DNA from: Thalia democratica
Taxonomy: Eukaryota
Length of the DNA: 64,000 bases
Reading direction: 5' to 3'
Assembly (NCBI GenBank): GCA_965202585.1
Contig: OZ241826.1
Coordinates: 80,104,001-80,168,000, forward strand
This document shows, in pieces, positions 1-64,000 of the stretch. Within the stretch, counting starts at the first letter, position 1; each line of letters starts with the position of its first letter. The position numbers and the translations under genes were made by a program. Below the pieces are notes generated by a model. The model did not search any database, was not told where the DNA came from, and saw only the letters and a list, made by a program, of their open reading frames with translations.

Positions 1-275
1 AACTTTAGAAAAACTTGGATGCTTCAGGCTAGTTAAGTTTTTTATAAAAACTCAGGCTAATTTTCTTTTAAATTTTGAATGAATTTGAGCTGATCCAGTT
101 TTCAATATTTGGTAATTTTCTAGTGTATTTTGTTCAAGAACTTGATTTCAGATTTTTAATTGTAAATAACACCTAAATTTGTAAACCTTGTGGCTAGCTG
201 TTTTACTTATTATTAGATTAAAGTTCTTTTTTTTCAGTTTTTAAAAACCTCATTCTGACTCAGGCTAGTTTATAC

Positions 276-543
276 TAGTGATGTAGCAGACTCACTATCC
301 GGGTCCGGCCGGATATTGCCATTTTTGTCTGATATCCGGATCCGGCCGGATTCTAATTTGAAAAAAAAGTCCGGATCCGGTTCCGGCCGGATTCTAATTT
401 GAAAAAAAAGTCCGGGTCCGGTTCCGGCCGGATTCTAGTTTGAAAAAAAAGTCCGGGTCCGGTTCCGGCCGGATTCTAACTTGAAAAAAAAGTCCGGATC
501 CGGGTCCGGCCGGACCCGAAATTTTGGGTCCGGTACATCACTA
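276..543. mobile_element. hAT-type non-autonomous element (MITE) with internal ~41-bp tandem array
   Basis: 10-bp TIRs TAGTGATGTA/TACATCACTA (Ac-like TAGGGATG termini); degenerate 8-bp TSD GTTTATAC/ATCTATAC (6/8); about 4.5 copies of TCCGGCCGGATTCTAATTTGAAAAAAAAGTCCGG(A/G)TCCGGT. Lies in A intron 9; not seen in C intron 9. Confidence 0.75.
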
Positions 544-920
544 ATCTATACTAATACTGTATACTGGCTTGCGGTATCACATGCAGTAAGCTCGGTTTAA
601 ATTATTAAACAACATTCAAAAAAACTCTTATTATTGATAAAAAATATTTTACAAAAACTATCACTTTATTAAAAGCTTTAAGCAGAGCAAAATAGTTTGA
701 CTTAAATAAAAACTTTAGTAGAGTTATCGAGTAATATGTCTACTTTGGTATGCTTAAAAAATTTGTTTAAAGAAGAAATCGATTATTTGTTGAATAAAAA
801 GATAAATTATCTTTGCTCTTATGTTGACGGAAAAATTTACTTTAAACGATTAGTTGCTATTATTTTAAAGGGCATCTGTTAGCGATTTTCTTTTTAGTAT
901 AATAAAAACAAATTACTCAC

Positions 921-3900
921 TTTTTATGGTCGAAGTTGATTGAATTTTCGTATAAGTTCGGCAGTAAGTCTAAAAAGTATTTATTTCAACATCTAGATTT
1001 TGTTATGTATTATTTGTAGATAGAAATTAAAACGCAGTTGTAGTGCTAATATGCCTACAGGTTTTAAAACTTTTAATAACTGAGTTTGCGTGTTAAAATA
1101 CTTTAAAAGCTATTAACTATAAAAACAAACCGTTGTCAATTTTTGATTTCTTGTTAGCAGTTGGATGTATTTCGTTTGCTTCTTCGATTAGCTGATTCTG
1201 CAAGAAAAAATAGTTGTAGATTGGTAAATAAAAAATATATTTTTTTTCTCTATATAACAAATTTCCAACCTGATTTTCTTCAAGGTTGTGTGATCTTTTT
1301 CGGGAAGCTGTATCTTCGCTTGCTGTATTATTTTGTACTTTGTTATTCTCTAAAGATGGAGATTGTTGTATTTGCGACGGAAAAGCTCTGAATTTTTTTA
1401 AATTCTAGCAACAAACTTCTCAAAATTTAGTAACCAAAAGACATGTGTTTGTTGTTGTATTGTTTTAATTTTATCAATATCTTGCTGATTTTGTAACATG
1501 ACAATTGCTTTAAACTTATTTATTTCAAGGAGAAACATTTAAATATTGATATGATAAGTTAACTTATATGGTGAATAATAAATACAAGTTTTTAAAGCTT
1601 AAATATTAATTGAAACATAAAGTTAATTATTTTACAACAAACATTTTTCTAGAAGGCAGGACGCAAGTGAAAGCGGAATTTTTCGTCGCTGATTCGATCA
1701 TATTAGTTTGCAACGGCGAGTTGTCAAAACCCATCAGATAAGTGCTGGGTAGGTTGCTTGGAAACGAAACCAACGGTTGCCATGCAGTGACGTCATCATG
1801 ATCTTCCTGCTGGTTGTTCATGGTTGAAGGGAAAATATGGCTGATTTTATTCGTGACATCATCTTCAGAAGAACTTGCCTATTTGATATTTTTTGTTTTG
1901 TTACAAAAATTTTACAAAAACTATCTGCAATGCTCAAAAAACATAGTTAAAAACCAAACTAACCAAGAATTAATTTCTAAATGTTGAAAGAAATTGAATT
2001 AAGTATTTGCTTATTTAGGTACAAAGATCAACATTTTTTGATTGTAAATTTAAAAGTATTTTGAAAACTAAAAGTCTAAAAAGATTTTAAGCATAAAACT
2101 TTACTATGCAATACACTATTTATATTATTTTTAAGGAACACCCAGAAAAAAACAATAAAGTTAAAACATTTTTTTAATGATACCTTTAAGATGAAGAAAA
2201 TTTATACTTGTAACTATTTAATTTCACCATCTTAAGACATTTTATCGTTGAAGCATTAGTTTTGTTAAGAAAATTTCAATGAGATAACAGACAAAAACGA
2301 AATCTCACCACGTGATTTTGAGCGAGGAAAGCAATGTTTTTCAGACACCATTCACATTCGCATTCGTTCTGATGATGAATGATCACCGATTTTGATATGA
2401 GAGCTTTCAGACTCTTCCCGTGATGTCTGATGCTTCTTTTCCAATCCTTGGCAGTCTCCCTCCCGCTTATTGCTTGGAACTCGTTGGGATGCATCCAGCT
2501 CTGCTTTCCCCCCAGCTCATACAAAATTGATTTGCCTGAGAAGTTATAAATGTTTAGTATAAATGTTTGTTTTAGCAAAAATTGTGTACTATTGAACAAA
2601 TCTGAGATTGTTGTTTCTTTTAGTTTTGAATTTTACATTATTAAACGCACTGATAACGAAGTGAATTTAAATTTATACGTTAAAAAATTAAGACCAAAAC
2701 AAAAAAACTGTGTTTCTTAAAACAAGCAGCTCACAATACTGTTGTACTAAAAATTCCAGTAAAAGACGACAAACTGCTAATTATCAAATTAAACGAAAAG
2801 CGTAACTGCTTGTATAAGTTTGTAGTTCTCTCATTTCAAACTCGCAATAATCTGGTTTTTATTGTTTAATAAACTGGAAGTAATTCGTCTTCTCCAAGGT
2901 TTTAAACTTTTTTACATATTTACAGCATTTTAATACGTGAGCGCTTACAACTAAATAGTTAATATTTTAATTTTCAAATTTTTCCTAATTTTTTATTATG
3001 CCACTCACTATAATCACGAATTTTATAGGCTTCTTGTTTGCTAACAAAGTAAAAATTGTCGATTTGGTGAGCTTTTAGATTTTAAATAAGTGTTAAAGTA
3101 AGCTAAAACTAAAAAAAAAAACATTTGTAAGAGCTTTTTATGTTTTTATGTAAAGACACTAAGTAATAAACAAAGAAACTTGATTTGCTTGTCAAGTTTA
3201 GATCGGTTGAATTCAAAACTAAATGTTGAATAATACCTTAAGTTACTTATTTTCTTCATTTTTCTTTGTAATAAAGCATTTAAAACTTTTAGGTGAAAAC
3301 TTTTCTTTTTGTTAAATAATTTAAATTTAACGTATAAAGATAGAAGACAAATAAATACAATAATACCATTAAACTTCACTCTGCTTTGTTTTACGCAAAA
3401 AGCTAATACATTTTACAGATAGAGACGGCGCTCCGAGCAAAAATCGACTTAAATATTAATAGAAAACTTCTCTAAAAAATCACGAGCGGCCTTATTGAAT
3501 GGAATTTTACTTTCTGGTCAAACAAACGAAAAGTGAGGCAAACATAAGGAACAGTCTGCGTTGCGAGAACGTGATTAAATTGCAACGAAATACTTTTGTG
3601 CGTAAGCAGCTAGCGAGTTTTTTTTTGGGCCCGTGATTTTGATTTCCAATCTTCTTTTCAGAATTTTTAAATGTGAGCTTTTACGTTTTTTAGTTTTTTG
3701 GTTTTTAAAGGTTTTGTTTAAAACGGACTTCGACTTTTGTTATTTACTGTTCTTAATAATGTTTTTGTAACACTACCAATATTTTATACTAGCTATGTGA
3801 AAAATAATATTGACACAATGTTTATGCATACTTCGACAAATAGATATAACAGCTCTTACAAAGATTTCGCACAAATGCATTATTATTAACATATATTTTA

Positions 3901-6900
3901 CATACATTTAGGTAAGTTTAAAAAGTTTTTACGCTTAGGTTTTATTTGAAAAAAAACAATTTAGATAACTACAAAGATTCTTTAAAAATCTTTTTGACTA
4001 AGATATTTTTATAAATTTTAAAAGCAGCACAAATTCGTAAATGACAAAAATAAAAAGCTTGAGTTTTATATACTTTTAAAACAAATTACTTTTTTATTTG
4101 AACAAAAGTATAATTTGCTTTTATGAAGCAAGGAAATTAATTAGAAAAGAAAAAAATATCCTATCAAAATAAGTATTTAGCAGTTTTAAACATTGCATAT
4201 TTATAAAACACTAGACAAAAATAATTTTAATCTAATTTAGTTTTATTTTTATATAGATGTACTGACAAACCTGTCTTTTAACTTTAAATAGTAACTTCAT
4301 AAAAAAAAATTGTTTAAACTATTCTTGTTTATAATTTATTAATTATTCATATCTTCATCAAGTAAAAAAAATCAAAATATTGCATTAGCTAAACAAATAT
4401 TTATAAACATAAACCCACCTTTGCTACCCTGGCTGAGTCTTGCGATGTAGAGGAGGGCATTGTTGTCGCCGCAAGTCACCTCCAAAAACTCCTCTCCTCC
4501 TTCGTCCTTCTTCACTTCCACCTCCGAGCTGCTCACGTGACCTTTCGGCAGGTTCACCGTCCACCTGCAACCCTCTGTTGCCACGTGGTGATGGCTGGTT
4601 GCCCCTGGAAACCGATTTTGAAGTCTCATTTTGCTCACTGAACTTTCCATCAAATCTACGGATGTTTTAACTTGTATTTTGTTGATTTATACTTTTGTAT
4701 ATTCTTATTGTATCTTTGTAAAATGAGCTTTTTTTATGTTACTTCAAGTTGTACTTTAACTATTTTCAAAGCTTGTTGGTTCACATTTCTATGACCAGTA
4801 TTATGAGTGAAGCTAATAAAATAAATAAAATAAATGTGTCGTAATTTGAGTAAACAGCTTCAAGTAGTTATATGCAATGTAATGTATATTTTGAATGTTT
4901 ACCGACGACAGTTGCTTTTAAGTTTTGGTCAACTATCCGATAAAAAAAGTGGAAAAAACAGCAAAACACTCGCAGGAAGCTTGAATGAAAAGGAAGCTCG
5001 TCAATTGATAAATTAGACACGCAGCCAATGGTGACCTTTAGCAACGCTTCTATCTAAGAAGGTTGTCATTGGCAACGTGCAACGACGCGAAGCAAAAACA
5101 AAAAAGCTGTAACGGCATGAAAAAGGATTTAGAGCTGCAATTATAGAAGAAGCGACGGCAGCAGTCGATCTTTCCTGTGACGCAGAAGGAAGCGAATAAC
5201 CGTGACCAATTTTCAATGTTTTTTTTAGCCTTTTTTGTACAAAGTAAATATTTGTCAACGCGAATGCGCGAACTGTCAGCAAATATCGACGGCGCTTTGC
5301 GAAAACAAGAGAATGCTGCTAGACGCTTTCTGTTTGAATTGTCGAAATTTAAACTGTCGTAAAAGTATGCATTTTTAGTATAATGAGTATTCATAGTTTT
5401 AATTACCGTGCAATTTTTTTTAGAAAATTAACAGTTCCTAGTTTTTGTTATTAACAAATATAAAGTTAGGATACTACTTCTAAATATACTTAAAGCTAAA
5501 AGCATAATATACTAAAAACTAAAAGTAAATAAATGATAAATTTATGAGATTCAAAACCTTGTTTGTTTTTTCGCCTTGCAGCGAAATTGAATGTTTGTCA
5601 ACGCGAGAGCGGCCAGTAAACATCGACGGCGTTTTGCGAAAAAACCATAGAATAACGCCGCTCGACACTTCGTGCTTACAAAAAAGCTTTTAACCGCCGC
5701 TCGCACGCCAAACAACGCTCGTTGTGACGTCATGATGATTGTTCTTGACACACACAACAGGCTTTCCAGCTTTCTTCGGTACAAAACGCCGTTCGACAGC
5801 TTAGGATCGAAAGACGAGAAGCTTTTATTCATTATTTATCGCCGCGTCGCATTTCGCTTCTTTTCGCTGCGGCCGTCTGAAACTCTCTTTCTATCGAAAC
5901 GTGTTAGGCGAGTGGTGCAAGAATAATTACCGCCCAAATTCGCCGAATGATTGAACGGCAGATAAAGCAAACTGAGCTTAATGAAGCTACTCAGAGCTTT
6001 TAGCCGATTTCAGAGGCGTGTTTCGTGATTTTTCGTCTCTCAAAGACGCAGAGCGAGACAAATCGACCTTTTAGCTTTTTTTAAATCTCGCGAAGTGCAG
6101 CTTAATTTATGGCTGTAGGTAAAATGTTTTGCTAATTTTTTAGCAAAGAAAAACATTAGATTTTTCAAGGAAGAAAAATTTCGGATTTTTTTATGCAAGC
6201 TTTTCTGCTTACTCGCAACTTTTTCTGCCATTCATTTTTCGTTTGTTTTTTGCTTTAGATATTCGAAAACATAAAATACAGTAAAGCAGAATGTAAGATG
6301 TGCAAGAACTTTCTGGTTAAATCAATAAAATTGATTAAGCTTTACATGTTTTATACCAAATTTCAAAGCAAACATATAATAAAGAAAATAAAAACTGTAA
6401 AGGCATGCGCTAAAATACACAAAAGTTCATCAACATGTTGACAGTCGTCTGCATTAACCTGTGTGCGAATATCGCAAGCTGTTTTTTAATCGAAAACCGC
6501 CAGCAACATAAAAACAAGAATCTTTCTCATTTTTTCTCAAACAAAAATAAATAATCACTTTCTCTATACACATGCGTTGAGCAATTTTGGGTTTTACAGC
6601 TGAAGATTGATTGAAACAAAAGGTAAGGTCAACGCTAATCCGCGGTGTCAGGACTTGGCACCGAAGTTACTGAAATCAGCTTTATATAGCAATCAAATCT
6701 ACTTTGAGCCGCGTAGCACCTATGTACGCGCGAGTTTGTACGGCCGATCAGTTGAATTTAAATTTAGTTAAAATTTAATGGACTTGTTTCAAGCTAGCGC
6801 GTCTGACGAGCTTTTAGAAGTACACGTTGAATGCAAGTTAAAATTAGGTTAATTGTTGAATTTCGTTTGTATATTGAGGCGCGGAATTTCAATATACTCT

Positions 6901-9900
6901 TTTTAATTTTTAAGCCTAAGAAAATTAAAACAATTGATTACTTTTATTAACCCTTTAATAACTCGAATGATTTAATGGTTTTACAAACGGTTTCAGATGT
7001 AAAATATATAAATGCTATAATATTTTATATCGGAAAATTTAAAACGAATTATTTATAAAATGACAAATAAAAGTTATATGGACAAATATAATTATAAATA
7101 TACATATCAACAAAATATACATATATGCACAAATAACGATGTCTAAATAAAAATATCTTATCTTTACTATCTTAGAAAACAAAAAAAAATAATATACATG
7201 AAAATTTTGTTTTGACTTTATTTTTTAACGTGTGTACACAAAACTATATAGTTCAACAAAAACTAACAGTTGGTGTTAGGAGTAACGACTCTTTTTCCGT
7301 TGCTACTAGTAACAACCGGGGGCTGCTGACATTCGACAACGGAAGTCGTGGATGACAGCACTGGTGATGACGTCATAGCGGAAGTTGATCTCTGTTGCGT
7401 GGAAACCAGCTTAAGATGATTGAGCTCGTTGTTGCTGTGTAAAAAAGAAAACTGTTTAACTAATCTAAAATATTGACAAAGTTGAATACTATTTTTAGTT
7501 ATTTTTAGTTTTTAAACTGTTTGTGTAAAACTATAGAAATATTAGGTAAGGAATTGATTAAAATTATTGCAATATAAGTATTTATTTTATCTTAAAAGCT
7601 GATAAAAATGTAATAATCTATTTAAGTAAAAACTTACCGTGAAAATTTTGCGTTGTCGAACATTGGCATATTAGATAATGGTAACATACCTTCTTGTTTT
7701 TTGTTCAGGTTCATCAAATTTAAAACTTGTAACCTGAAAGTGTTTATTTTTAATCAACAACAAACTAAAAAGCCGTTTTTGAAATTTATTACAGTATACT
7801 ACCACTTAAGTACGCAAACTGGACCCGACCAAAAAGTGCGTACTTAGCACGGGTAGTGCGTACTTTTTGACGACATAGTATAATATGAAATTTAGTTGTT
7901 TTTTTTCTTTCTTACAACTAGCCACCAAATAATTAAGCCAAATAAACTAGTCTTTTTATTTTAAATAACATTTAATACATAATTCTAATCTGCAAATTTT
8001 TTTACTAGAATTTAAAATGATTTATTTTTTCTATAAAAAGTTTCTACATAATAAAAACATACGTTTAATATAGAAAGTCAATGTCAGCCAATGATATAAA
8101 AAAGAATATTAAGCCATATTTTCATATTTTGTTTTGTTAGAGGGAAAGTACCAAACTACATTGTGTTTACTAAATGTTTTCAAAACATCAATGTGTGTAC
8201 ATTTAAATTAAATTATGACTTAACTATGTTGTATTTGTAGGTTTTTTTAAGTTTGTCATCTATATTTATTTATTTTATAGCTTTACAGCTCAAATACCAT
8301 TATTCTTTTCACTTTTATGCAACCACTACATAAGTATTTAATTTATTAACATTTGATAACAGGGCTGTCACTATCTCGGGCCACTTAGACTACTCAGGAT
8401 TACTCACCCTAGTTTAAAAGTTGTGAAAGTCTCAGGCTAACTCAGCAGATTGGCCATTCTAACCATATATCAGTCTTTCTGGATAAGTGCGTAATTAAGG
8501 CGGGGTGCGTACCAAAAAAAGTGCGTACTTAAGCGGTAGTCTACTGTACACTTTTATAAAGTACTCAAAAAAAATTATTACGTTGGAAAATTTCGAAAAG
8601 GTTAAAAATTGAACTTTAATGTTTTAAAGTTGTTTTGTTCAGAAAAACATTAAAATATACTAAAGAACCTAGAACAAAACACAAATTAAATAAAATTCAA
8701 GTTTTTGGTACTAAAATGAATAAACGATTAAAAAAAAATTGCAGACAGCGTATTTAATCAGTTGTATAATATTTTTGTTGTTACAACTCAACAAGTCAGT
8801 AGTTGCCATAGCAACCAGCCACACACGCGCCAGTAAAAACAAATCTGACGACCACGTTGCCATGTAAACAAGCTCCTTAGCAACGGTTGCCAAGTTGCGA
8901 GCTGCAATGAAGCAGATAAACGCTTGAGGTCTCTCGCATGGTAACCAAGGTGGCATGGTTGCTTGGCAACCGGGACGTCCCGCTTTTAGCACTTCCACAC
9001 TTCAGTTAATCAGCTTCGACGAAAATCACCGACGTCTGCGAAGGCGGTTTTAAGCTTCCTCCAGACGCGGTAAAGTAAACCGTATGTCTATAGTTTCAAG
9101 GTTTTTCTCAAGAAAAAGCTTTTTTGATGGGATGTGTTTTCTAAGTCTAGATTTTAGGAGTTTTAAATAAAAAAATTTAAACAGACTACTTGATTTAAGG
9201 AAGTACTTTAAAGTTGTAAGTTCATTGTCTCTTTAAAAAAAGTTTGCACATATCTACTGAACTTAGTAGTTTTTTTTAATAAATTATGTGCTGAATAATA
9301 ACTGAATAAATAGCTCGAACTTTTTTACAAAACTTTAAGTATTCTTGGGCTAAGTATAAGCACCTGAAGTAAATTTTATGCTCGCTCACAAATTTATATG
9401 TTATTTTTTTATTAAAAGACTACAAATGTACAGAAAGAATTACCACAACCTAAAACTAAACAATTCAGATAATTTTAAGGCAAAATTTCTTTATTAGAAG
9501 AATAGTAATCTCTTCGAAGTTTTAAATAAATCCAACCAATGTCAATTCCAATCGGCATTTTCAACCATTGATAAAACAATCATTTTGTTTATTATATACT
9601 TAGTTTAAAACAAACAATGTTTATCTACTCACCAGTTAACTTGATTCTGGTCTCCAAATTGTAGCGGGTCGAGCCCGGAAAATTCACCACCTTTTGGCTG
9701 CTTAGCCCCATTCAACCCACTGAAGTTGGAGGAAGTTTGGGGAAATCCCCTAGGAAAGGGGTTACCAGGCAACATGGCTGCCGGGTTGTTAAGCATCCAC
9801 ATACTAGGAAGGTCGGGTTGAGAAAAAATATTCCCGAACTCGGCACCTGATTGGCTTAAAATTGTCGATAAATCGGGAAAAATACCCGGAACTGCTGAAG

Positions 9901-9907
9901 AACTCAT
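921..9907 (-). CDS. SAMD11: SAMD11-like SAND(+SAM) chromatin/transcription factor, copy A (exons 1-9 of 14; 3' part beyond window start)
   Basis: Phase-consistent GT-AG exons 9907-9633, 7733-7638, 7434-7268, 4655-4419, 2535-2309, 1878-1643, 1387-1270, 1197-1131, 969-921, open throughout. Exons 4-5 give FLEVTCGDNNALLYIARLSQGSKG|KSILYELGGKQSWMHPNEFQAISGRETAKDWKRSIRHHGKSLKALISKS (SAND, KDWK motif). This closely matches my recollection of the N-terminal SAND of long vertebrate SAMD11 (EVECGANRALLYVRKLCQGSKG...PNEFQFVSGRETAKDWKRSIRHKGKSLKTLMSKG). The symbol means 'like'; orthology is untested. Confidence 0.85.
7792..8546. mobile_element. Tc1/mariner(pogo)-type MITE in intron 1 of copy A
   Basis: TIRs CAGTATACTACCACTTAAGTACGCA and TGCGTACTTAAGCGGTAGTCTACTG (23/25 complementary), TA on both sides, subterminal GTGCGTAC repeats. 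It accounts for most of the extra length of A intron 1 relative to C. Confidence 0.8.
8780..8972. promoter_or_regulatory. Cluster of RFX X-box-like motifs in intron 1 of copy A
   Basis: GTTGCCATAGCAAC 8782-8795, GTTGCCATGTAAAC 8856-8869, GTTGCTTGGCAAC 8958-8970 plus half sites; the block is conserved in C. Confidence 0.55.
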
Positions 9908-10139
9908 ATTTTAAATGTTTTTATTGATCTGAAATATATACGACTAATATTTTTCAACAAATTACAAAACTACTATTTTCAATGTATACTGTATTTTTAA
10001 AAAATGAAATTTATACTCAAAAAAAAAATTTTATAATGTGGTTTTCAATAAAATTTTTCATAAATCAATTCTACCTCATTTCGAAAAAAAAAAGAAATAT
10101 AATATGTTTTTTAGAAAATTTTAATTATTTTAGACTTGA

Positions 10140-10750
10140 GACAAACGCGCTCCTCTCATCATGTCGTTACCACGGCAATCAAATTCGACCGTGGCGACGA
10201 CCGGGGAGGAGGCACCAAGGAAGACAGATTTCGATAACTAATTTATTTTACTTCGCGGTGACGTACCTCGACGTAACGGGACGAAATCGTGTTAGCAGAA
10301 GATTCCTGTGTAAACAGCAAAAGCCTTGCGGCGCGTTGTGCGAAAAAAACCGCAGCTCTCTTTTCATTGTTTGTGTGATTGCGATAAAACACGCAACCGA
10401 AAACACACCGAGCAAAAATCACCGCCCCTTTGTGATTTTAGCAGCACTTTTTCCTTATTTAAATATAAAAAAACATCGACGGTCTCTAACGAGCTGACAA
10501 TTAACGAGAGAAGAAATCAGCGGCGCGTTGTGTGTGGTAGCTGAAAGCGACTTTAAAATCGCGTGTCTTGAGATTAGCGGATAAAGAGGCGAGGTGGTGT
10601 CGGCAAGGTCGACGACAGATTGATTTTTTCTGTTTGAAACTGAAGTTAACGCGACAGTTTTCGGCATACCACTTGTCTGTCTTGATTTTTTTTTTGTTCG
10701 CCTTTTTATTTTTTTTTTTTTGCCAGCCGACACCTACTGAATATTGTTTA
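10140..10750 (-). promoter_or_regulatory. CpG-rich promoter / non-coding first exon region of copy A
   Basis: CpG-rich island homologous to 40170-40640 (B) and 52990-53650 (C). A GAG|GT donor is conserved at 10267/40361/53495, and an AG acceptor lies 21 nt before the ATG in A (9928) and C (54343). Confidence 0.5.
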
Positions 10751-11089
10751 AAATATTTGTGATGGAAGACCTAATGTATTGAAAGTGAATGAAAAGCTTG
10801 CCACCAGCCTATGAGGATTTTTGTGCTGCAAAAAATTATTTTTTGCCTTAAAAAAGTACTTATTCTGAACAAAAGTGCTGTTAAATTATATATTACTTGG
10901 AACGAAAGTAATTTAAATATAAGCAAAACAATATTTTACTTATAACCCTTTTGAATTTATTTAAAGCTTTAGTAAAAATAAAATACTAACGAAATCCGTA
11001 TGGCTTCTGCTATCATTCAAAACGCCCATCAGACATTATAACTTTATGAAAGTAGCCAACATCAACCTCCAAACGCAAAACAGGAGCTG

Positions 11090-11345
11090 CCAGCTAAACG
11101 CCTGCTAATTCGGCGCCTTTAATTAGCCGCATGTGAGGAGTTGCCTTCACTTGGAAGCCATAAAAAGAAGGCTCGAGTTCAAAACAAAGTCGATGCCCAT
11201 CATTCACATACAACTTGCCCTCACCTAATTTCGCTGCTTCTTTTCTTGCTAAGATTATTCCTTTCGTTTCTTTCACTCGCAAGCTGCCTTGTCAATCGTG
11301 AAATAGGAAAAGGCAGCTAGCTGCTGAGATAACGCGCTGTGTGTG
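11090..11345. repeat. Upstream conserved element, four copies (also 26300-26650, 40870-41170, 52420-52700)
   Basis: Shared core GCAGCTTGCGAGTGAA(C/A)GAAACGAAGG..AGAAAAGAAGCAGCGAAA(T/C)TAGGTGA(A/G)GGCAA. The reading frame is broken differently among copies. Confidence 0.8.
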
Positions 11346-52500: not shown

Positions 52501-52989
52501 AACGAAGGAATAATCTCAGCAAGAAAAGAAGCAGCGAAACTAGGTGAGGGCAAGTTGTATGTGAATGATTGGCATCGACTTTGTTTTGAACTCTTCTCTT
52601 TATGGCTTCCAAGTGAAGCCAGCTTCTCACATGCCGCTAATTAAAGGCGCCGAATTAGCAGGCGTTTAGCTGGCAGCTCTTGTTTTGCGTTTGGAATTTG
52701 ATGGTGGCTACTTTCATAAAGTTATAATCTCTGATGGGCGTACTTTTGAATGGTAGCAGAAGCTATACGGATTTCGTTTGTATTTTATTTTTACTGGAGC
52801 TTTAAATAAATTCAAAAGGGTTATAAGTAAAATGTTGTTTTGCTTATATTTTAATTACTTTCGTTCCAAGTAATATATAATTTAACAGTACTTTTGTATA
52901 GAATAAGTACTTTTTTAAGGCAAAAAATAATTTTTTGCAGCACAAAAATCCTCATAGGCTCGTGGCAAGCTTTTCATTCACTTTCCATA

Positions 52990-53650
52990 CATTAGTTCTT
53001 CCATAAGAAATCTTTAAAACGACAACCAGTGTGTCGGCTGGCGAAAAAAAAGTAGGAAGGGAAACACAAAAAAACGAGACAGACAAGTGGTATGCCTAAA
53101 ACTGTCGCCTTCTCTTAAGTTTCCGAATTTAGAAAATCAATCTACCGCCGCCCTCGCTAATTTCACCTCTTTATCTGCTAAAATCTATACATTCAACTTC
53201 AAAGCTGTTTCACAGACAGCTACCACACACAACGCGCTGCTATTTTTTACTCTCGCTAATTGTCAGCTCGTTAGATGCCGTCGCTGGTTTTTTCTACTTA
53301 AAAGTACAATAAGCTATTAAAAAGCAGAGGGGCGGTGATTTTCGCTCGGTGTGTTTTCAGTTGCGTGTTTTTATCGCAAACACACAAACAATGAAAAGAG
53401 CTGCGGTTTTTCGCACAACGCAGCGCTCGGATTTAGTTGTTTACACAGCGCGCTTCTGCTAACACGATTTCGCCTCGTTTTCATTTTTCGCTGAGGTCCG
53501 TAACCGCATCACCGCAACTGGTTGCTGACAACAGAGCTGATCGCAATCTGTCTTGCTCGGTGCCTACTCCCGGGTCGTCGTCTCGGTCGAAATCGTTTGC
53601 CGTGGGAACCAGATGCCGAGAGGAGCGCGATGGCCTCAAGTCTAATGAAT
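52990..53650 (+). promoter_or_regulatory. CpG-rich promoter / non-coding first exon region of copy C
   Basis: Reverse complement of 10140-10750; candidate donor GAG|GTCCGT at 53496. Confidence 0.5.
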
Positions 53651-53805
53651 CAGAATTTTTCATTGAACTTTTTTTCTTTTGCATTTTTTTGAAAAGAGAT
53701 TGAATGCGACGTTTTAAAATTTGTTTTGAAAGTGTCAGAGATACGTTAAGCTTTTAGTTGTTTTAATATTATATTAACTTTTTAACAAGGAAACGTAAAA
53801 GCATC

Positions 53806-53897
53806 TATCATAAAACATTTTCATAGTTATCCCTTTTGTATGTAATAAGTTTATCATAAAACATTTTCATAGTTATCCCTTTTGTATGTAATAAGTT
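53806..53897. repeat. Perfect 2 x 46-bp tandem duplication in the 5' intron of copy C
   Basis: TATCATAAAACATTTTCATAGTTATCCCTTTTGTATGTAATAAGTT repeated exactly. Confidence 0.95.
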
Positions 53898-54363
53898 TTC
53901 AATTAATTGATATGCAAAACATTAGTATTTACAATTCTAAATGTAAGAACAAGCTGGTTTAGGTAATATCTTAATTAAAGAAAAATTTTCGAACAAAAGT
54001 TTAAGATTTAAAAAAGATTTTTACAGATTTTTACCAACTATAGTTAATTATTTATCAATTTTACTTTTTGTTATAAATTAATTATTTGTTTCCTAGTAAA
54101 ATTATGAGTAACAAATATCTCCATTTAATTCATGGTAAAATAACAATTATTAAATAATTACCAATTAGTACTTGTTTATATTATTCAATTTTCTTAAAAC
54201 TGAAAGTCATTAAAAATACTGTTCAATGAAAACTACAGATTAAACAGACTGCTTTATTTCTTTCAAACTATTAAAACTATGTTTTACTTAACAAAGAATG
54301 TTTTGTAAATTTAAAAAATATTAGTAATCACGTGAATTACAGGTAAATAAAAATACTCTAAAT

Positions 54364-57300
54364 ATGGGTTCTTCAGCAGTTCCGGGTATTTCTGCCGATT
54401 TATCGACAATTTTAAGCCAATCAGGTGCCGAGTTCGGCGATATTTTTTCTCAACCCGACCTTGCCAGTATGTGGATGTTTAACAACCCGGCAGCCATGTT
54501 GCCTGGTAACCCGTTTCCTGGGGGATTTCCGCAAATTCCCTCTAAGCAGCAAAAAGATGGTGAATTTTTTGGGTTCGACCAGCTTCAATTTGGAGGCCCA
54601 AACCAACTTGACTGGTAAGTAATTTGGCAGAAATTTAATTACTAGATACTTAAGTAAAGTAGAAAGTTTTTTTTTTATCGACTGTTGAAAATGTATTTTG
54701 AAAAATATGCTGTTTAAAATACTATTAAACTTCAAGGAACTGTATTTTTTTCAATTGATAAAGAAGTGTTAATTTTAGAATAAATTTGGTTGTCTAGCTC
54801 TTTTGTCTGGTAATTCTTCAAATGTATTTATACTCTAACGCTACAGGTTAAAATACAAAAAAAAAAGTTAATTATTACCATAAAATTTATCTCACGTATT
54901 TTTACTTGGCTCAAAGAGCTTTAAAAGTTCTACGAACAAAGTTAAAATTAATAATTTAATCTGGTTCAAGTGTTATCGAAAAGTATTTATAAATTACCTG
55001 TAAATATCGATATTTTTTTTTTAAGCGATAATAAAACTAACAACTTCAAAGAAGTACTAGCTAAATCCAATTGTTTCGTTTTAAAGTAGTTCTTGCTTAA
55101 AACTCTAAAAAACTAAGCTTAAATAAAACAATCATCTTTTTTAGAACTTTTTTTGGAACCTTAAAGTTATTAATTTCAAAGTAACACTAACTGATAAAGT
55201 TGTGTCTTTCTAAATAACACTGCTAAAGACTATAAAAAACTAATTCTCGAAAACATTTACATCAAAAAGATTTTTCTTGAGAAAAAACTTGAAGCTTTAG
55301 ACATATGGTTTACTTTATTGCGTATGGAGGAAGCTTAAAACCGCCTTAGCAGACGTCGGTGATTTTTGTCGATGCTGGTTAATTAAAAGTACGACGCTGA
55401 AAGTTGGACGACCCGGTTGCCAAGCAACCATACCACCTCGGTTGCCATCCGAGAGACCACAAGTGTTTATCGGCTTCAATGCAGCTCGAAACTTGGCAAC
55501 CGTTGCTAAGGAGCTTGTTTACATGGTGACGTGGTCGTCGGATGTGTTTTTACTGGCGCGTGTGTGGCTGGTTGCTATGGAAACTGCTGACTTGTTGAGT
55601 TGTAACAACATAAAAATAACTACTGTTTAACACGCTGTTTGCGAAAAAATTTCTTTCGTTTGATTTATATATTCAACTTTATATTAAAACTTTTCTTTTG
55701 TTCTAGTTTTTTTTTAATAACTTAATATACTAATTTTCACAAACGCTGTTTAAATTTTTAATTGCTTAATAGTCAACTTTTTCAGGTTACAAGTTTTAAA
55801 CCTGATGAACCTGAACAAGAAACAAGAAAGTATGATGCCGTTTCCTAATATGCCAATGTTCGACAACACAACGCTTTCACGGTAAAATAATAAATTACTA
55901 AAATAAAGCGTGTTTCTATCAGCTTGTAAGATAAAAAACTAACCTTCTCAACGGTAAAGTTTTGAATTAATAAAACTATTACTAAGTCGTTTTTTATTAG
56001 ATTTTTTTAAGACAAAAAACTATAACTTTTACTCACAGTAAAATTAGTTATCATTTTTTCACAGCAACAACCAGTTCAATCATCATCAGCTTGTTTCAAC
56101 GCAACAGAGATCAACTTCCGCTATGACGTCATCACCAGAACTGTCATCCACGACTTCCGTTGTCGAATGTCAGCAGCCCCCGGTTGTTACTAGTAGCAAC
56201 GGAAAAAGAGTCGTTACTCCTAACGGCAACTGTTAGTTTTCGTTGAACCGTGTGGTGTTGTGTACATACGACAAAAAAGTCAATACGAAACTAAAATTTT
56301 CATTTATATTTAGTACAATTTTTTCTATATATATGTATCATTTATATTTTTAAACATTTTTTAATTCGTTTTTGATTTTCTATTAAAATCTTTATGATAT
56401 ACATAGCCCTTAACCTCGCATATGTGGAACAAATTTTGCAGCTGATAAATTGGTTTAATTTCTTTAGAAATTAATTGAAGCTAGCAATGGTTTCAATACT
56501 CTCCAATACAGCTTTAATTTTTTTGTGACATTTACGGATGGAGAAAATGTTACAGGTTTTTAATATAAACTTTAAAGTTTATGTATTTAAGCGCTTAAAT
56601 TTATAAACGAAGTTTACACATATTAACTTACACTCGTCAAAGCTTTTCGGGCTCGCAAGTTTTTAACAGGCGCAATTGATTTTCAACAAAATCAAATTTG
56701 AATGATCAACCGTACAACCTCGCGCGTACTTAATTGCTATTCTACTCAAATTTGATTGCTAAAAAAAGCTGTTTTCAGTAACTTCGGTGCTAAGTTCTGA
56801 CACTGCGGATTGGCGTTGACCTACCCCTTTGTTCCAATCAATCTTCGGCTGTAAAATCCGAAACTGCGCAACGCTGATGTATAGAGAAGGTGATTAATTA
56901 TTTCGTTATACATCGAGAAGGCTTCTTATTGTATTGTTGTTGGCGGTTTTCAAACAAAATACTGCTTGCGTTATTTGCACACAGGTCAATGCAGACGACT
57001 GCCAACATGTTGATAAATTTTTGTGTATTTAAAGATTAGGATGCGCATTTTTTTATATCATATTTTATTATTTTTTTGGTTTGAACTTTGATATAATACA
57101 TGTAAGACTTGATCAATTTTATTAATTTTTTCAGTACGTTTTTGCATGTCTAACAAGTCTAATATGTTTGATGCTTTGAAATACTTCAATGGCTGGCAAG
57201 AAATAAAAAGCCTGACAAAGAAAAATGACTGACAAGAAAAGCTGCGGCCTACATGAAAAAAATCTTTTTTTTCTTTGCTGAATTTTTAGAAATATTTTAC

Positions 57301-60300
57301 TATAAGCTTCTCGCTTTTAATTAAGCTGCACCTCGCTAAGATTTTTAAAACACTGAAAGGTCGACTTGTCTCGCGATGTGTGTCTTTGAAAAGCGTTAAA
57401 TCACGGAACACGCCTCTGAAATAAGCTAAAAGCTTTGAGTGGCGCAGCGAGCTAAGTTGGCTTCTTATCTGCCGTTCAATCATTCAGCGAGTTTCGGCGG
57501 CAACTATTCTCGCATTGTTCGCCTCACACGACACGATAGAGATAGAAATTCAAACGGCCGCAGCGAAAAAAAGCAAATAAAATTTGGTGCGGCAATAAAT
57601 AATGAATAAAAGCTTCTTGCCTCAATCAATTATTCGCAATGTAGGTTTTCAAACACATCACCGAGGACAGTTGAATTTTAGTTTTTATTGGCTTTCCGAG
57701 ATAAAGAAACAAAAAGTGAAAAGGCAAAAAACTTGCAGGTTGCGTTATAAAATAAAGCTTGAACGAAAAGGAAGCTCGTCAATCGATAAATTAGACACGG
57801 AAGACAGCTAATGGTGACCTTACGCAACGATTCTATCTACGAAGGTTGTCATTGGCAAAACACAACGATGCAAAAAAAAAAACCGATGAGCTGCAATGAC
57901 GTGACAAAGGATTAAGAGCATAAAGAAGCAGCGACGGAAGCAGATGATTTCGAGTAGAAGGAAGCAAATAAGCGTGACTAGTTTTCAATATTTGTTTTTC
58001 ACCTTGCTGCTTGTACAAACAAAAATATTTGCGGTGTCAACATGCGAGCGGCCAGCAAACATCGACGGCGATTTAAAAAAAAATAAGAGGAGAACGCTGC
58101 TTGACGCTTTGTGCTAACTAAAAAGCTTTCAGCTGCCGCTCGCACGCCAAACAACGCTAGCTGTGACGTCATAAAGATCTCTGTGTCAAAAGTTCTCGCT
58201 CTCGTCACACCAGGCTTTCCAACTTTCTTAGTTACAAAGCCCCGCTCTACAGCTAAGTATTGACGACGAAATACTTTTCACTTTTTTTTTTCTTTTTCTC
58301 AGAAAGCAAATAAAAACTAAAATTCAACTGTCCTCGGTGAGTGTTTGAAAACCTTCATTGCGAATAATTACTTTTAGCTATTTACTCAAAATTTAGTAAT
58401 TTGAAGGTTATAATTTTCTAATATCACTAATAAGTTTGGTAATAGAACTGTAAATTAATAGGCTATGAAACATATCAAAGCGGATATTTAAGTAACGAAA
58501 ACCATAAGCTTATTTTACAAATATGAAACTAAAAGTTAAAATTTTAAGATAAAATATTTACAGATTTGATGAAAAGCTCAGTGACCAAAGTTAGAACACA
58601 AAACCGGTTGTCAGAGGCAACAAGCCATCACCACGTAGCAACGGAGGGTTGCAGGTGGACGGTGAACCTGCCGAAAGGACACGTGAGCAGTTCGGAGGTG
58701 GAAGTGAAGAAGGACGAAAGTGGAGAGGAGTTTTTGGAGGTGACTTGCGGCGACAACAATGCCCTCCTCTACATCGCAAGACTCAGCCAGGGTAGCAAAG
58801 GTATTAACATACTTTTTTTTAATTCAAATACTTTTATTCGAAAATAAAGAAGCATAAAATTAATTTATTGTCATAGTTAATAAGTAAACTATAGTTAAAA
58901 AAAATCTTAAAGACCCTTTCAATCGTCAGTATACATTTTTTATTTCCTATATTTACTTTAAATTGGATTGTTCTTACTTGGTATATGTTTAAATAAGTTA
59001 TAGGTTTATATTTATGTAATTATTATAAAATATCAGTAAAATTTGTAAGTACCTCTATATTAAAACAAAACTAGATTGGATTATAAACGTTGCTGTCTAA
59101 TGTTTTATAAAAATGCAGTGTTAAAAGTGTTTAAATGTTGATGTAGATAATATTTTTTCTAACATTTTTCAAAAGTTCATGGCTACAAAAACAGTAAATT
59201 AAATGTTTGTGTTCTACCAATTTTCAGTTATATCAAAAATTACAACTTGTATCAAAATTGTTTTGTTTTTTATTATTACATATTGTTATTACAGTATTTA
59301 AAAATGTGATTAAAAAGAAAATATATTTTTAAAAACTGTTTAGTGTATCCAAACTTACATTAAACAAACCTTTAATAAAAAAATTAAAGCTCCTGTAAGT
59401 GTATCTAAAATAAAAAGCTTTGTTTTACAACAAGAACTGTCAAAACTAAAAATTATTTTGAGCAAAGTCATTAAGAATGTTATACATGTATGTAAAATAT
59501 ACAACCTTTTTAAAATATTGTTTAAAAATGTTTTTTAAATAGATTTAATTTAGAACAACTCAAAATAGATATTAAAAAAAAAATTGTTTCAAGCTAGTAA
59601 AATAAAAAAAGTTAACATCAGAATTATATCTATAATATTTTTACAAAAGTAAAAGAAATTATAAAAGTAAAGGATAACTCGCTAAAAAAATGTGACAATA
59701 AATTAAGACTTAAACGACAATACGAGAGAATTTTCAAACGAACGGCGTCAACAGCTCACAGTTAAATGGCTGCAAATCAAAACAAAAGCAATTGCTCACA
59801 AAAGTATTTCGTTGCAATTTGATTACTTTCTCGCAACGCAGACTGTTCCTTATATCGCCTAGATTTTTTTGTTTATTTGACCAGAACGTGAAATTCCATT
59901 CAATCGGGCCGCTTGTGATTTTTTCTAACATTTCTCTTCATTTCTAAGACGGCTTTTGCGCTAAATGTCGTCTCTATCCGTAAATTACATTAGCTTTTTG
60001 CGTGCAACTAGTAGAACAAAGTTTAACGTTATTACTGTGCTCTTTCTTTTCTATTTTTGTACGTTAGACTTTAAAGCTTTAAGAAAAAAAATTTTATCTA
60101 AAAGTTTTAAATAGTTTAATACAAATTAAAAAAAGAAAACAGGTACCTCAAGAAAGTTTTCAACGTTTAATTTTACGGATCTTAACTTTACAGGCAAATC
60201 GATTCTGTATGAGCTTGGGGGCAAGCAGAGCTGGATGCATCCCAACGAGTTCCAAGCGATAAGCGGGAGGGAGACTGCTAAAGATTGGAAGAGGAGCATC

Positions 60301-63300
60301 AGACATCACGGGAAGAGTCTGAAAGCTCTCATGTCAAAATCGGTGATCATTCATCATCAGAACGAATGCGAATGTGAATGGTGTCTGAAGAACATTGCTT
60401 TCCTCGCTCAAAATCACGTGGTGAGATTTTGTTTTTGTCTGTTATCTCGTTGAAAATTTTTTAATTAAACTGAAGCTTTAGCGGTAAAGTACTTTATCCT
60501 AGGGAAAATTAACATTTGCTGATACAAACGATAATCATTATGTATGTGTGGTTAAAAAAATTGTTGAACTTTTATTTTAGTTTTTATTTTACAGATAGAC
60601 TAAAAGCAAAGATAAAAAAATTATATATAGATAACATAAATTAAAAAAATAAAGTTATTTGTTTTTAGTATATTTAGCAAAAATTAATTTAGAAAAGATA
60701 TTTTATATGGTACATGAAAAAGGCTGATTTTAATTAGTTACAAAGCAAATATTTTAATCCTAGGTATTTTGGTTTTTTAACTTCGTTAAAGAATATAGAT
60801 GTTACTTTTTTTTTTTTTAATTTCTTTAAGTTAACAAAATATCAAACAGACAAGTTTATCTGAAGATATCGTGCCAAATAAAATAAGCCATATTTTCCCT
60901 TCCACCATCAAAAACCAGCGGGAAGATCATGATAACGTCACTGCATGGCAACCGTTAGTTTCGTTGCCAAGCAACCTACCTAACTCTCCTATGATGGGTT
61001 TCGACAGCTCGCCGTTGCTGGCCAAAATCGGCGAATCAGCGACGAGAAGTTCCGCATTCACTTGCGTTCTGCCGTCTAGAAAAATGTTTGTTGTTTATTT
61101 TTTTTCGAACTGAGCAACCTTTTTATTACATTTTTTAGTATGATTTAAACACTAAATGTGGTTTTACAATGTATATCTTAAAGCACATTTCACAAAAGTT
61201 TTGTATTTTATAAATTTGTTGCTAATATTTGAAAATTGTTTAGAGCTTCCCCACCACAAATTCAACATAAATATCCATCTTCGACTGAGAAAAAAGTTCA
61301 AAATCATTCTTCAAACGAAGAGACATCTTCCCGAAAAAGGTCTCACAACGTTGAAGAAAACCAGGTTTGGAATTGTTTCAATTGGAAAAATTTTTTTTTG
61401 AAATATTTATCTATCAAATTTAAACAGTTTAATATTTAAGAATCGTTTGAATGAAGAAGCAAACGAAACACGTCCTACTGTTAACAAGAAATCAAAATTT
61501 GAAGATGGTTTGTTTTTTAAAATGCATATTTTAAAGTATTTGAACTCATAGAAATAGTAATATGAATTTTAAAATCTGCAGATAATTTAGTACTACTGTT
61601 TTTTCTGTAATTTTGTTTTACAAACAATACAAAATTAATTCTAGATATTAAAATACAGATTTTTTAGACTTTCTGCCGAACTTACACGAAAATTCAATTA
61701 ACTTCGACTACAACAAGTAGGTTTTTATTATATTAAAAAGAAAATTGCTAACAGCTGTCCTTAAAAATAAAAGCAAATAATCGTTCAAAGTAAATGTTTC
61801 CGTTAACATACGAGTAAAAATAATTTATCTTTTTATTCAGAAAATTTTAGATTTATTTTTAAAACAAATTTTTTTTTCAAGTTCTCAGCCTACAAAAGTA
61901 CATGTTACAAAAAATATATAACTCTATATTTTTAACAAAGTTTTAATTCAAGCCAGCTTATTTTGCGCTGCTAAAAATTGACATTTAAACTAATTTTTGC
62001 AAATAAATGTTTGTACACTTCTAACATTTTATTTTGTTTTATATTCTAAAATTATTATAGACAGATAAATTATTTATTATACTGTATAACTGTTTAGTCT
62101 ATATACTATTATTTATTTAACTTGGCTTAAAAATCTTTAATTTACATTGAGATGGTTTAAAACAATGTTGTTATTATTTATAGATTTTTTAGATAAAGTT
62201 TTTGTACAAAATATAGTGGTAATGAATTATTTTATAAATATTAAGTTGCTAAAAGTTTTACAGGAAAACAATTTTTTTACTTGACGAAAGTTTAAACTTA
62301 AAGTATTTGTAACTTACTAGATTAGAACTATTTTATTTTGTAGAATAAAAAAGCTTTATGAAGCTAAAAACAGTTGTTTGCATAGCAGATTTATCATGAC
62401 TTTTATTATTTATTATCTTGTTTACGTGTATAAAAAAAGTTTTATATTAAAGTTAAAAAACTAGTAGTAATTATAAGTCATTTTTTTTAACAAATCTTTA
62501 TTGAATTTTAAATTATATTTTTTAAGTTAATAATTTTGTTTTATTTATTAATTTATTTCTAGACTAATGCTGGATAAGACGAATCTTGTAAAGAACATGG
62601 CAGCTGCATTCGGTCAATTGGCGCCAAATTTACTTGAAAATATTAAAATAAATTGCAAGTCTGAAGCAGAAGAAGATGTGAGCCAATCAGAAGAATGGCA
62701 TTCAAAAAATGTCAATCTGAAAAACAACTCAAAAGAAGCTAATGTTGAAGTTGTAAACAAGTAAGTAGTTTTATGTATATTTAAACTTTATGTTGCACTT
62801 AAGTTAACCCTTTTAAAGCAAGTAAGTCTTAGAATCTACAAAACATATTTTATCTTCAAACATATTTTATCCGATAAGCGTTTTTACTTCATAATGTTAA
62901 AAACATCCATATACCAAAAATTCAACTAACAAACCTTGAAACTTAACTTAAAAGCTAAGTAAATAAACAATAAACTTATGTTTCAAAATTAACTTCATAG
63001 CTGTCAAAGCACATTACGTAATTATTGTAGAACTAATTTTTTACTTTAATTCTAGCAAAAGAAACGAAAAAAATGAAACAGCTGTTATAAAGTCAATGCA
63101 GAAGAACGTAAAAAGATCAAAAAGTGTTCCTATGTAAGTTTGTAATATTTTTTGTAAAATTTATTTATGGATATAGTTTAATTTTTAAATAGATATAATT
63201 CAATCAAATAAAAATGCATACTTTGTATCACATAACTTTTGTTTTCTTTTTCAAAGCTTTGTAAAGCTGATAGTTGTAAAAAAATATTCCTACTGCAGTA

Positions 63301-64000
63301 AAACTTAACCTTTTGTGAAACAAAAATAAAATGTTAGATTTTCATTTTCAGAGAACTTAAAGAACATACCAAAAGGCTAAGAACTTCTAGTTCACTTTTT
63401 AACTCGTAAGTTTATAAGAACTTTATACATCTAACATAAATTTGTTGTTTAAATCTGTAATAACCTTGTTTTGCTTTACAGAAATTCCACTTCAGAAGGC
63501 GTTTCTCTTAACAACTTTAATCTTCTGAACAACAAAACAACGCTTAAAACTGAACCCCTACATCAAACCCAAACAAAAAACGCTTTATTGTTGGGTAAAA
63601 CTAACAACAGAACGTCTTTTATGTCTCCTGATGAACTTACAATTGAAACGATATTGAAAAACTCTGATGACATGATCAAATGGAGTTGTGAAAGAGTCGG
63701 TCAGTATTTAGATGAAATCAATTTGGGACAGTATAAACAAGTGAGTTGAAATTATAAAACTCAAAACGCATCATTTTCTTTAGGAATTTCTTAAGACTAT
63801 GTATAATTAAATTCGAACGTAGTCATAAATAGTTTTACTTAATACTAAAACTTTGAAAATAAAAGGACTTCAGTCTTGTTTAAATTAAAATTTTTAAGTT
63901 GTTGTTTGTTCTACAACACGAAATAGAAATATAGTTATGCAATAGTAACCATGACAACAGATCTTCCTTGACAACGGAATCAATGGACATTCCCTCCCGT
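54364..64000 (+). CDS. SAMD11: SAMD11-like copy C (inverted paralogue of A; final exon truncated by window end)
   Basis: Exons 54364-54614, 55786-55881, 56065-56231, 58564-58800, 60194-60420, 60850-61085, 61244-61364, 61441-61507, 61668-61716, 62563-62760, 63056(or 63082)-63132, 63352-63405, 63482-63740, 63961->64000. SAND in exons 4-5; SAM starts WSCERVGQYLDEINLGQYKQ|IFLDNGINGHSLP. Sizes of exons 2-6, 8 and 9 equal those of copy A. Exon 11 keeps frame only with the 63082 acceptor. Confidence 0.82.
55415..55585. promoter_or_regulatory. Paralogous RFX X-box cluster in intron 1 of copy C
   Basis: GTTGCCAAGCAAC 55416-55428, GTTTACATGGTGAC 55517-55530, GTTGCTATGGAAAC 55571-55584. Confidence 0.55.

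Follow-up and report, generated by a model that had tools for sequence, protein, structure and literature searches.

An apparent giant palindrome in Thalia democratica is probably two old, opposite-facing units of a remodelled SAND-SAM gene cluster

The stretch of DNA analysed here, C1:80,104,001-80,168,000 (64 kb, hereafter the window), comes from the 802-Mb genome of Thalia democratica. It contains three paralogous genes, A, B and C, identified from open reading frames (ORFs) and Pfam matches, which belong to a SAND-SAM ('SAMD11-like') family. A mirror-image pattern runs across the window and is real. In the initial annotation it was taken for a single decayed fold-back duplication. We find instead that the pattern is probably produced by two old, opposite-facing copies of a repeat unit of about 25-30 kb within a much larger cluster remodelled by repeated duplication, inversion and patching, and not by a private giant palindrome. 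The homology of A and C is family-level, ancient and not homogenised.

The window has a G+C content of 29.5% and zero Ns. Comparison of the window with itself by blastn yields 42 distinct inverted high-scoring segment pairs (HSPs) in total, and 26 of these, with 11,753 of the 14,093 aligned bases, have their midpoint at 31-34 kb and form one dominant anti-diagonal. The HSPs of this main band are strictly collinear from 677/61,976 through 26,706/40,817, which bears out the preserved order within each arm that was first described, and the midpoint shifts from 31.3 to 33.8 kb along the band because the left arm is about 5 kb longer. The biggest of them joins 10,043-11,675 to 53,731-52,130 (78%, 1322 bits). 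As a control, the window was compared with its own plain, non-complemented reverse, which gave a single HSP of 51 bp. All eight inverted pairs named in the initial annotation were recovered:

4.4-4.9 kb / 58.8-58.3 kb, blastn
9.6-9.97 kb / 54.6-54.3 kb, blastn
14.55-14.68 kb / 49.94-49.76 kb, blastn
15.9-16.0 kb / 48.7-48.6 kb, blastn
20.4-20.7 kb / 46.5-46.2 kb, blastn
26.2-26.7 kb / 41.3-40.8 kb, blastn
22.7-23.8 kb / 43.8-42.7 kb, sensitive settings only
25.6-26.75 kb / 42.0-40.8 kb, sensitive settings only

The self dot plot that had been proposed as a check gives one dominant anti-diagonal, and scattered genome-wide repeats are not what makes it. The statement that all inverted matches share nearly one midpoint holds for the dominant band, but not for a second anti-diagonal between B and C (nine HSPs, midpoint about 47 kb) or for a few other inverted matches, among them some with midpoints at 25 kb and 51 kb.

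Genes A (minus strand) and C (plus strand) are arranged head to head with B between them. The left arm consists of gene A and about 17 kb of 5´ DNA and extends from about -3 kb to 26.8 kb; the right arm consists of gene C and about 13.5 kb of 5´ DNA and extends from 40.8 kb to past 64 kb. Both thus reach beyond the window, with the SAM exon of A located 2.6 kb before position 1 and C exiting at 64,000. The inner ends, at about 26.8 kb and 40.8 kb, enclose a spacer of about 14 kb that carries gene B, in line with the asymmetric spacer of the original description. X-type and Y-type in the following list denote two kinds of SAND-SAM gene:

1..9907, minus strand: gene A, X-type, outer left arm (ORFs, Pfam SAND, tblastn exon map, inverted HSPs)
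9908..26835, minus strand: 5´ intergenic region of unit A, inner left arm, collinear with the 5´ region of C
26837..30452, minus strand: 3´ flank of gene B, single copy except in the younger partner block described below
30453..39829, minus strand: gene B, Y-type, the spacer gene (tblastn exon map, identity matrix, HSPs to the gene G3)
39830..41333, minus strand: element R proper, the proximal 5´ flank of B, whose outer 0.5 kb forms the right arm's innermost element
41334..54363, plus strand: 5´ intergenic region of unit C, inner right arm, with 66-69% identity to the 5´ region of every other unit
54364..64000, plus strand: gene C, X-type, outer right arm, exiting the window (ORFs, Pfam, tblastn)

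In gene A, the ATG is at 9907, the first SAND exon at 4372-4653 and the second at 2276-2599; in gene C, the ATG at 54,364 is followed by SAND exons at 58,566-58,847 and 60,163-60,453 and a SAM exon at 63,471-63,749. Gene B has its ATG at 39,829 and its 3´ end near 30.5 kb, and its introns are unalignable with those of A or C (55-60%). The outer arms match almost continuously, at 72-87% in HSPs (those of gene A reach 54.3-62.0 kb) and at 59-81% in 1-kb bins. Between the 5´ regions of A and C, identity is 80% at 10-12 kb and 58-68% past 14.5 kb; with sensitive settings, 6.6 of 12.3 kb of the inner arms can be aligned at 58-68%. The impression that the inner arms are the more diverged was therefore correct, with the exception of the innermost element, 26,221-26,706 against 41,291-40,817, which is 79.6% identical and shows that there is no simple or monotonic identity gradient along the arms.

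The window is part of a cluster of SAND-SAM genes that spans at least 280 kb and holds at least 10 genes in mixed orientation. The first SAND exon has 18 matches genome-wide, 10 of them inside C1:79.91-80.19 Mb. In the window and the 200 kb to its left, a tblastn map places nine full genes in 264 kb without gaps or Ns, in the orientations + - + + - - - - + from left to right. Units to the right of the window are known from match coordinates and one 3.3-kb locus. In window coordinates, the genes are:

G1, ATG at -198.5 kb, plus strand
G2, ATG at -161.7 kb, minus strand
G3, ATG at -145.6 kb, plus strand
G4, ATG at -106.5 kb, plus strand
G5, ATG at -48.5 kb, minus strand
G6, ATG at -17.0 kb, minus strand
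A, ATG at 9.9 kb, minus strand; B, ATG at 39.8 kb, minus strand; C, ATG at 54.4 kb, plus strand
D, tenth gene and next to the right of the window, about 85 kb into the right flank (listed locus C1:80,187,551-80,190,831), plus strand

More copies are found on C1 at 82.06 Mb and on C96 and C2. All units match all others in a dot plot. Islands conserved in the 5´ region of A repeat in the same order upstream of G2, G5 and G6, and the repeat unit therefore comprises the gene together with 13-17 kb of 5´ DNA. Adjacent paralogues that share introns and this length of 5´ DNA are what is expected of a tandem gene-family cluster.

In this setting, the anti-diagonal of the window is not private to A and C. 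The anti-diagonal that C forms with other units is as extensive as the one it forms with A:

C against G6: 13.9 kb aligned, reaching 40.1 kb, 73.6%
C against A: 9.9 + 2.7 kb aligned, 75%
C against G5: 9.7 kb aligned, 76.0%
C against G2: 9.8 kb aligned, 74.3%

The 5´ regions show the same lack of preference, C being 66-69% identical to all units and 66.0% to A; in the same comparison, A and G4 are 88% identical and G2, G5 and G6 are 84.5-85.7% identical to one another. Of the seven candidates scored in a genome-wide search, none came closer to C than about 78%. The initial annotation had the fold-back act on a pre-existing tandem array, which predicts that G6 and D are mirror neighbours. These are 84% identical as against 72-75% for the A/C arms, so the pairs differ in age and this part of the proposal is not supported. 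Nothing points to conversion between the arms of A and C.

The relationships of the copies were studied in an alignment of nine units, each comprising the gene and 5 kb upstream. Five mutually similar copies left of the window, G1, G2, G4, G5 and G6 (hereafter clade I), are 83-90% identical among themselves. For A, identity is 74-78% with clade I and 72% with C, and C is 72-73% identical to every other X-type copy; C is equidistant from all copies, and only the interval 10-12 kb slightly favours A/C. The Y-type genes B and G3 are 86% identical to each other in this alignment (86-90% for gene B as a part of the window) and 55-60% to the rest, and they can be aligned with the X-type only in exons. 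In maximum-likelihood (ML) trees rooted on the divergent B/G3 type, the grouping of A with C varies by segment. It is strong at 0-2.7 kb of A (100/99) and at 10-12.3 kb (98/96) and weak at 2.7-6 kb and 8.5-10 kb, and in two other segments it is neither recovered nor rejected (p value of the approximately unbiased test 0.27-0.38). When the first SAND exon and the 1.6 kb to either side of it are placed in a tree of 12 copies, A groups with G2, G4 and G5 within clade I (100/100) and C forms a long branch by itself; at 3-5 kb, A is 82-87% identical to clade I and 71% to C. Gene A, nested in clade I in its middle and grouping with C in two segments, is therefore a mosaic.

The first SAND exon itself (34,597-34,793, 4,417-4,635 and 58,606-58,802 in the window) is 90-99% identical across all 12 copies of both types, and the introns next to it reach 47-55% between X-type and Y-type, where they are unalignable. 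Such a pattern suggests either conversion limited to the exon or extreme constraint. The first SAND exon of B is 94% identical to that of its sister G3 and 96-97% identical to those of X-type copies.

The centre of the window has a history of its own, recorded in a long block and a tract within it:

12617..41333 (28.7 kb, 45% of the window), unstranded: younger inverted duplicate or long conversion block, comprising the inner A arm, the B 3´ flank, B and R
C1:79,956,849-79,994,504 (37.7 kb; -147,151 to -109,496 in window coordinates): partner of the block, comprising the distal 5´ region of G4 and G3
22800..25100 (2.3 kb), unstranded: tract of 97.5% identity within the block, with its partner 142 kb away

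The partner lies 122-188 kb to the left of the block, is inverted and matches it continuously. The HSPs between the two have identities of 83.5-91%; in 500-bp bins the values are mostly 82-95%, and the average is about 88-89%. There are two large differences in length, 6.8 kb at position 26,836 and 3.1 kb at position 34,397. The block has sharp edges: on the left, identity rises from 55-69% to 87-95% within about 100 bp at 12.6-12.7 kb, and on the right it falls from 83-95% to 56-77% beyond 41.35 kb. Collinear homology of 55-77% persists outside both edges. The genome-wide search found no other high-identity partner of the block. As the block is later than the arms and has its partner at a distance, one event cannot explain the whole window. 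The tract contains 58 differences in 2,300 bp; its flanks contain 83 in 600 bp and 157 in 959 bp. It has no third copy in the genome and its counterpart in the C arm is about 62% identical, so that the high identity reflects recency, not constraint; the tract is best read as a later non-allelic exchange. Segmental duplications are conventionally defined by a length of at least 1 kb and an identity of at least 90%. On this scale, the A/C arms fall short (72-80%), the block has a mean of about 88-89% and reaches 90-95% in many 500-bp bins, and the tract stands at 97.5%.

The reverse complement of the window as a whole is collinear with G2-G3-G4, C corresponding to G2, B to G3 and A to G4, and the cluster therefore contains two mirror-image X-Y-X palindromes. 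The block may have arisen in either of two ways: the whole triple was copied and its left outer arms were then overwritten by clade I, or the central block alone was transferred, through homology-directed exchange.

Two small elements help to define the unit. Element R is the proximal 5´ flank of a B/G3-type gene, and the orientation of the genes in the cluster switches at its copy next to B (39830..41333). A shorter copy lies at the inner end of the left arm:

26221..26835, minus strand: R relic (promoter-proximal flank of a B-type gene), innermost left-arm element, 79.6% identical to 41,291-40,817

This relic terminates the 5´ region of unit A; units G4, G5 and G6 likewise end in R relics, and a further one is found about 2 kb past the window end. 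In a tree of R, which like the inner arms was analysed without an outgroup and resolves only three lineages, the relic of A has no special affinity to the R of B. The other element, of about 160 bp, is present at 6,401-6,570, 22,212-22,390, 44,704-44,851, 44,942-45,088 and 56,875-57,036. It occurs twice per unit in opposite orientations, one copy being intronic and one about 12 kb upstream, and 19 of 19 candidate places genome-wide fall in SAND-SAM loci. Since the element is confined to these loci, the arm matches are not dispersed repeats. It is family-specific rather than a transposon, and may be a regulatory cassette.

The homologies, identities, block boundaries and tree positions described above were observed directly, and the following history would account for them. 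The cluster is made of a unit of 25-31 kb in which an X-type gene is followed, on its 5´ side, by 13-17 kb of DNA and, at the end, by an R relic, the latter derived from the promoter flank of a divergently transcribed Y-type paralogue. A and C are probably two old copies of this unit placed head to head around B, and their homology gives rise to the anti-diagonal. The middle of gene A would have been exchanged with clade I. The central 28.7 kb (inner A arm, B and R) would have been duplicated or converted at about 0.13 substitutions per site, with the mirror-image X-Y-X locus G2-G3-G4, 122-188 kb leftward, as partner, and 2.3 kb inside the block would have been re-exchanged at about 0.025 substitutions per site. 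Judging from the patterns, a unit may have been duplicated in inverted orientation, or tandem units may have been inverted, and the inverted copies would then have undergone non-allelic homologous exchange. The raw difference of about 28% between A and C corresponds to a Jukes-Cantor distance of about 0.35, and the tree path from A to C is 0.36. The layers, in substitutions per site, are:

split of the A, C and clade I lineages, 0.35
radiation of clade I, 0.11-0.19
28.7-kb block, 0.13
2.3-kb tract, 0.025
17-kb tandem duplicate left of the window, 0.008

Other explanations were weighed against this history. In the model of the initial annotation, one fold-back duplication made both arms across the entire window, B is a unique spacer, and the arms have decayed, more so inward. 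The arms are indeed inverted and collinear for about 26 kb around a 14-kb spacer with B, A and C come out as sisters in rooted trees, and at 10-12 kb A finds its best match in C (80-81%, compared with 75-78% for the other units). These parts of the single fold-back claim stand. The claim as a whole nevertheless appears unlikely: a distant locus shares one later block made up of the inner A arm and B, which partly refutes the claim for 12.6-41.3 kb; A nests in clade I in mid-gene; the 5´ region of C and its R have no special affinity to those of A; C has equally extensive anti-diagonals with G5, G6 and G2, matching all units; and the identity gradient is broken by the innermost element. A more elaborate alternative is that a mirror-image copy of the whole X-Y-X palindrome arose at a depth of about 0.13 substitutions per site and that the left outer arms were later overwritten by the spreading clade I, so that the central block alone would still testify to the event. 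The collinearity of the whole reverse-complemented window with G2-G3-G4 speaks for such a copy, as do the low-identity collinearity that crosses both block edges and the fact that clade I is a recent radiation present in both orientations. We regard it as possible but doubtful, as it requires two large replacements with edges that match the block ends, the 5´ region of G2 is 84.5-85.7% identical to those of G5 and G6 and thus slightly older than the 88% block, and there are no A-type or C-type traces in the gene bodies of G4 or G2.

Two further explanations would remove the pattern from the history of the cluster altogether. An assembly artefact, with haplotype duplication or a mis-join responsible for the arms or for the way C is oriented, is very improbable. 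Near-identical repeats do exist in this assembly, as the 99.2% tandem duplicate of 17 kb left of the window illustrates; but an arm identity of 58-80% is far too diverged for haplotypes, the 264 kb contain zero Ns, mixed orientations repeat throughout the cluster, and the segment 38.5-44.4 kb is present in three runs from two labelled organisms with even unitig depth. The Logan unitigs concerned (200-800 bp, from the three runs and a marine metagenome) hold this segment with polymorphism and are too short for order or orientation. Haplotype duplication as the source of the arms was rejected on account of their divergence. The chance alignment of scattered, dispersed repeats or transposons has practically no likelihood. 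The element of about 160 bp that recurs at 6.4 kb, 22.3 kb, 44.8 kb, 45.0 kb and 57.0 kb is the kind of sequence that could suggest it, but it is limited to SAND-SAM loci genome-wide, the matches cover exons as well as non-coding stretches of up to 1.6 kb, and 26 collinear HSPs on one band refute the idea.

Several points weigh against reading A and C as no more than two old units of the cluster. In the ML tree of all 6,023 columns, A and C are sisters (100/99), on a short stem (0.031) with long tips (0.15 and 0.20). Because the rooted trees make them sisters with high support, a single ancient inverted duplication may have made the A/C pair, and the term family-level may undersell their relation. 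The root of these trees is itself weak, as the outgroup B/G3, with an identity of 55-60%, aligns mainly in exons and is near noise elsewhere, and as the exons have been homogenised throughout the family; a clock-like midpoint root would place C outside A and clade I. Furthermore, the direction of the 28.7-kb transfer, whether of the triple or of the block alone, could be either way, and long-range order and orientation come from the assembly alone, the reads being short unitigs. The sister relation of A and C is thus supported but not secure, and the most cautious description is a near-trichotomy in which the A-type, the C-type and clade I are old lineages.

The reading of A and C as old units of a remodelled cluster finds parallels in known systems. 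Ampliconic palindromes of sex chromosomes, such as P1-P8 of the human Y and those linked to the X, have arms that are more than 99.9% identical and are kept so by arm-to-arm gene conversion. The window resembles them in its inverted, gene-bearing arms, in the unique spacer that carries a gene, and in the multi-copy family region. However, its arms are 58-80% identical (outer 72-80%, inner 58-68%) and thus below the 99% expected of such palindromes, they are not closest to each other, A being 74-78% identical to clade I and 72% to C, and there is no A/C-specific homogenisation. Conversion-like signals are limited to the central block against a locus 142 kb away and to one exon family-wide. The sex-chromosome analogy first offered for the window is therefore not sustained, in that it fails on arm identity and conversion between A and C is not seen. 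Clusters of olfactory-receptor, defensin and KRAB-zinc-finger genes are tandem arrays remodelled by segmental duplication, inversion and non-allelic gene conversion. The cluster described here is like them in its mixed-orientation paralogues, a unit that includes intergenic DNA, age strata (99%, 88%, 83-90% and 72-75%), mosaics and sharp identity switches. It differs in that it belongs to a marine invertebrate genome and involves a family of SAND-plus-SAM regulators, in that the unit bears the relic of a second, divergently transcribed type of paralogue, and in that X-Y-X occurs twice as mirror images. A third comparison is with human DUP-TRP/INV-DUP structures, inverted duplications with a spacer that arise via replication template switching or fold-back priming. 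As in these, an inverted copy is set off from its template by a short unique spacer; the likeness is one of geometry, as junction microhomology is unreadable here at this divergence. Overall, the structure is of an ordinary kind, a remodelled gene cluster with inverted paralogous units and a clean layered history.

The SAND-SAM family to which the cluster belongs appears lineage-specific, judging from protein matches. The second SAND exons of A and C match Pfam SAND (PF01342) with 52.9 and 44.5 bits, respectively, at a cut-off of 22. The match to Pfam SAM (PF00536 / PF07647) has 18.1 bits against a cut-off of 23, and the exon inside the window holds only the first 20 residues of the domain, the remainder lying past the window end. 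Among 1.8 billion representative proteins, the second SAND exon matches one 141-aa fragment at 90%, and the next matches are generic SAND proteins at up to 65%. The nearest named relative is a sea-slug protein with the automatic label 'sterile alpha motif domain-containing 11', whose only Pfam match is SAND; save for this 'SAMD11' label, the protein search returned no informative family name beyond SAND. A search of the literature on tandem expansion of SAND plus SAM genes found nothing relevant.

The intergenic parts of the units carry additional features. The left arm is interrupted by an insert:

16900..20150 (3.3 kb), unstranded: insert found only in the 5´ region of A and its younger 88% partner (1-kb tiles at 17-19 kb match the partner only)

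Within this insert are an 82-aa ORF without a Pfam match (17,728-17,976, minus strand) and, on the plus strand at 19,540-19,655, a SAM-exon relic (tblastn SAM match at 19,549-19,626). The relic resembles the SAM exons of both B and C, the match to that of B being inverted. Local tandem duplications occur in both arms within the G+C-richer proximal 5´ region, at 13,042-14,573 and 15,899-16,850 on the left, with periods of about 720-820 bp and 775 bp, and in mirror position at 49,979-51,202 on the right, with a period of about 530-690 bp. An ORF-like stretch is kept between the arms (12,783-13,154, plus strand, and 51,117-51,407, minus strand), each copy pointing away from its gene. In the 3´ intron region of A, a CCGG-rich 41-bp tandem repeat at 334-514 has 4.4 copies with 95% matches, and upstream of C a 46-bp sequence is perfectly repeated twice at 53,806-53,898. 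Rfam and tRNA scans of the window for RNA genes gave nothing.

Outside the window, the left flank at -90,527 to -56,602 (C1:80,013,474-80,047,398) contains the 17-kb direct tandem duplicate mentioned above, 99.2% identical in one HSP of 16,983 bp, which copies the 3´ part of G5 including the SAM exon. It is either a very recent duplication or an assembly artefact of the haplotype-duplication type. On C96 (about 9.6-57 kb), there is an X-type copy 95% identical to D and a third gene of the Y-type, which shares 70-82% identity with B and has an R of its own; this may be an alternative haplotype of the right flank or another X-Y pair.

In conclusion, the apparent giant palindrome illustrates that such a pattern in one window can be a frame effect on a larger array of units. 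For annotation, A, B and C should be treated as non-equivalent paralogues, and portions of A and of the intergenic DNA as having different histories. The sharp-edged young block and its 97.5% tract can be used as markers for long-range non-allelic exchange in this genome. We tentatively consider, as a serious possibility short of an even chance, that the C-B-A and G2-G3-G4 palindromes are still exchanging over 120-190 kb through non-allelic conversion between inverted copies, with one SAND exon kept at 90-99% in all copies; the 28.7-kb block at about 88% and the 2.3-kb tract at 97.5% would be two layers of this exchange. If true, a 'palindrome of palindromes' would be driving a lineage-specific family of DNA-binding regulators to evolve in a concerted yet mosaic way. 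While no long-standing question is opened by it, the locus offers a layered history of a lineage-specific expansion of SAND-SAM chromatin/transcription regulators.

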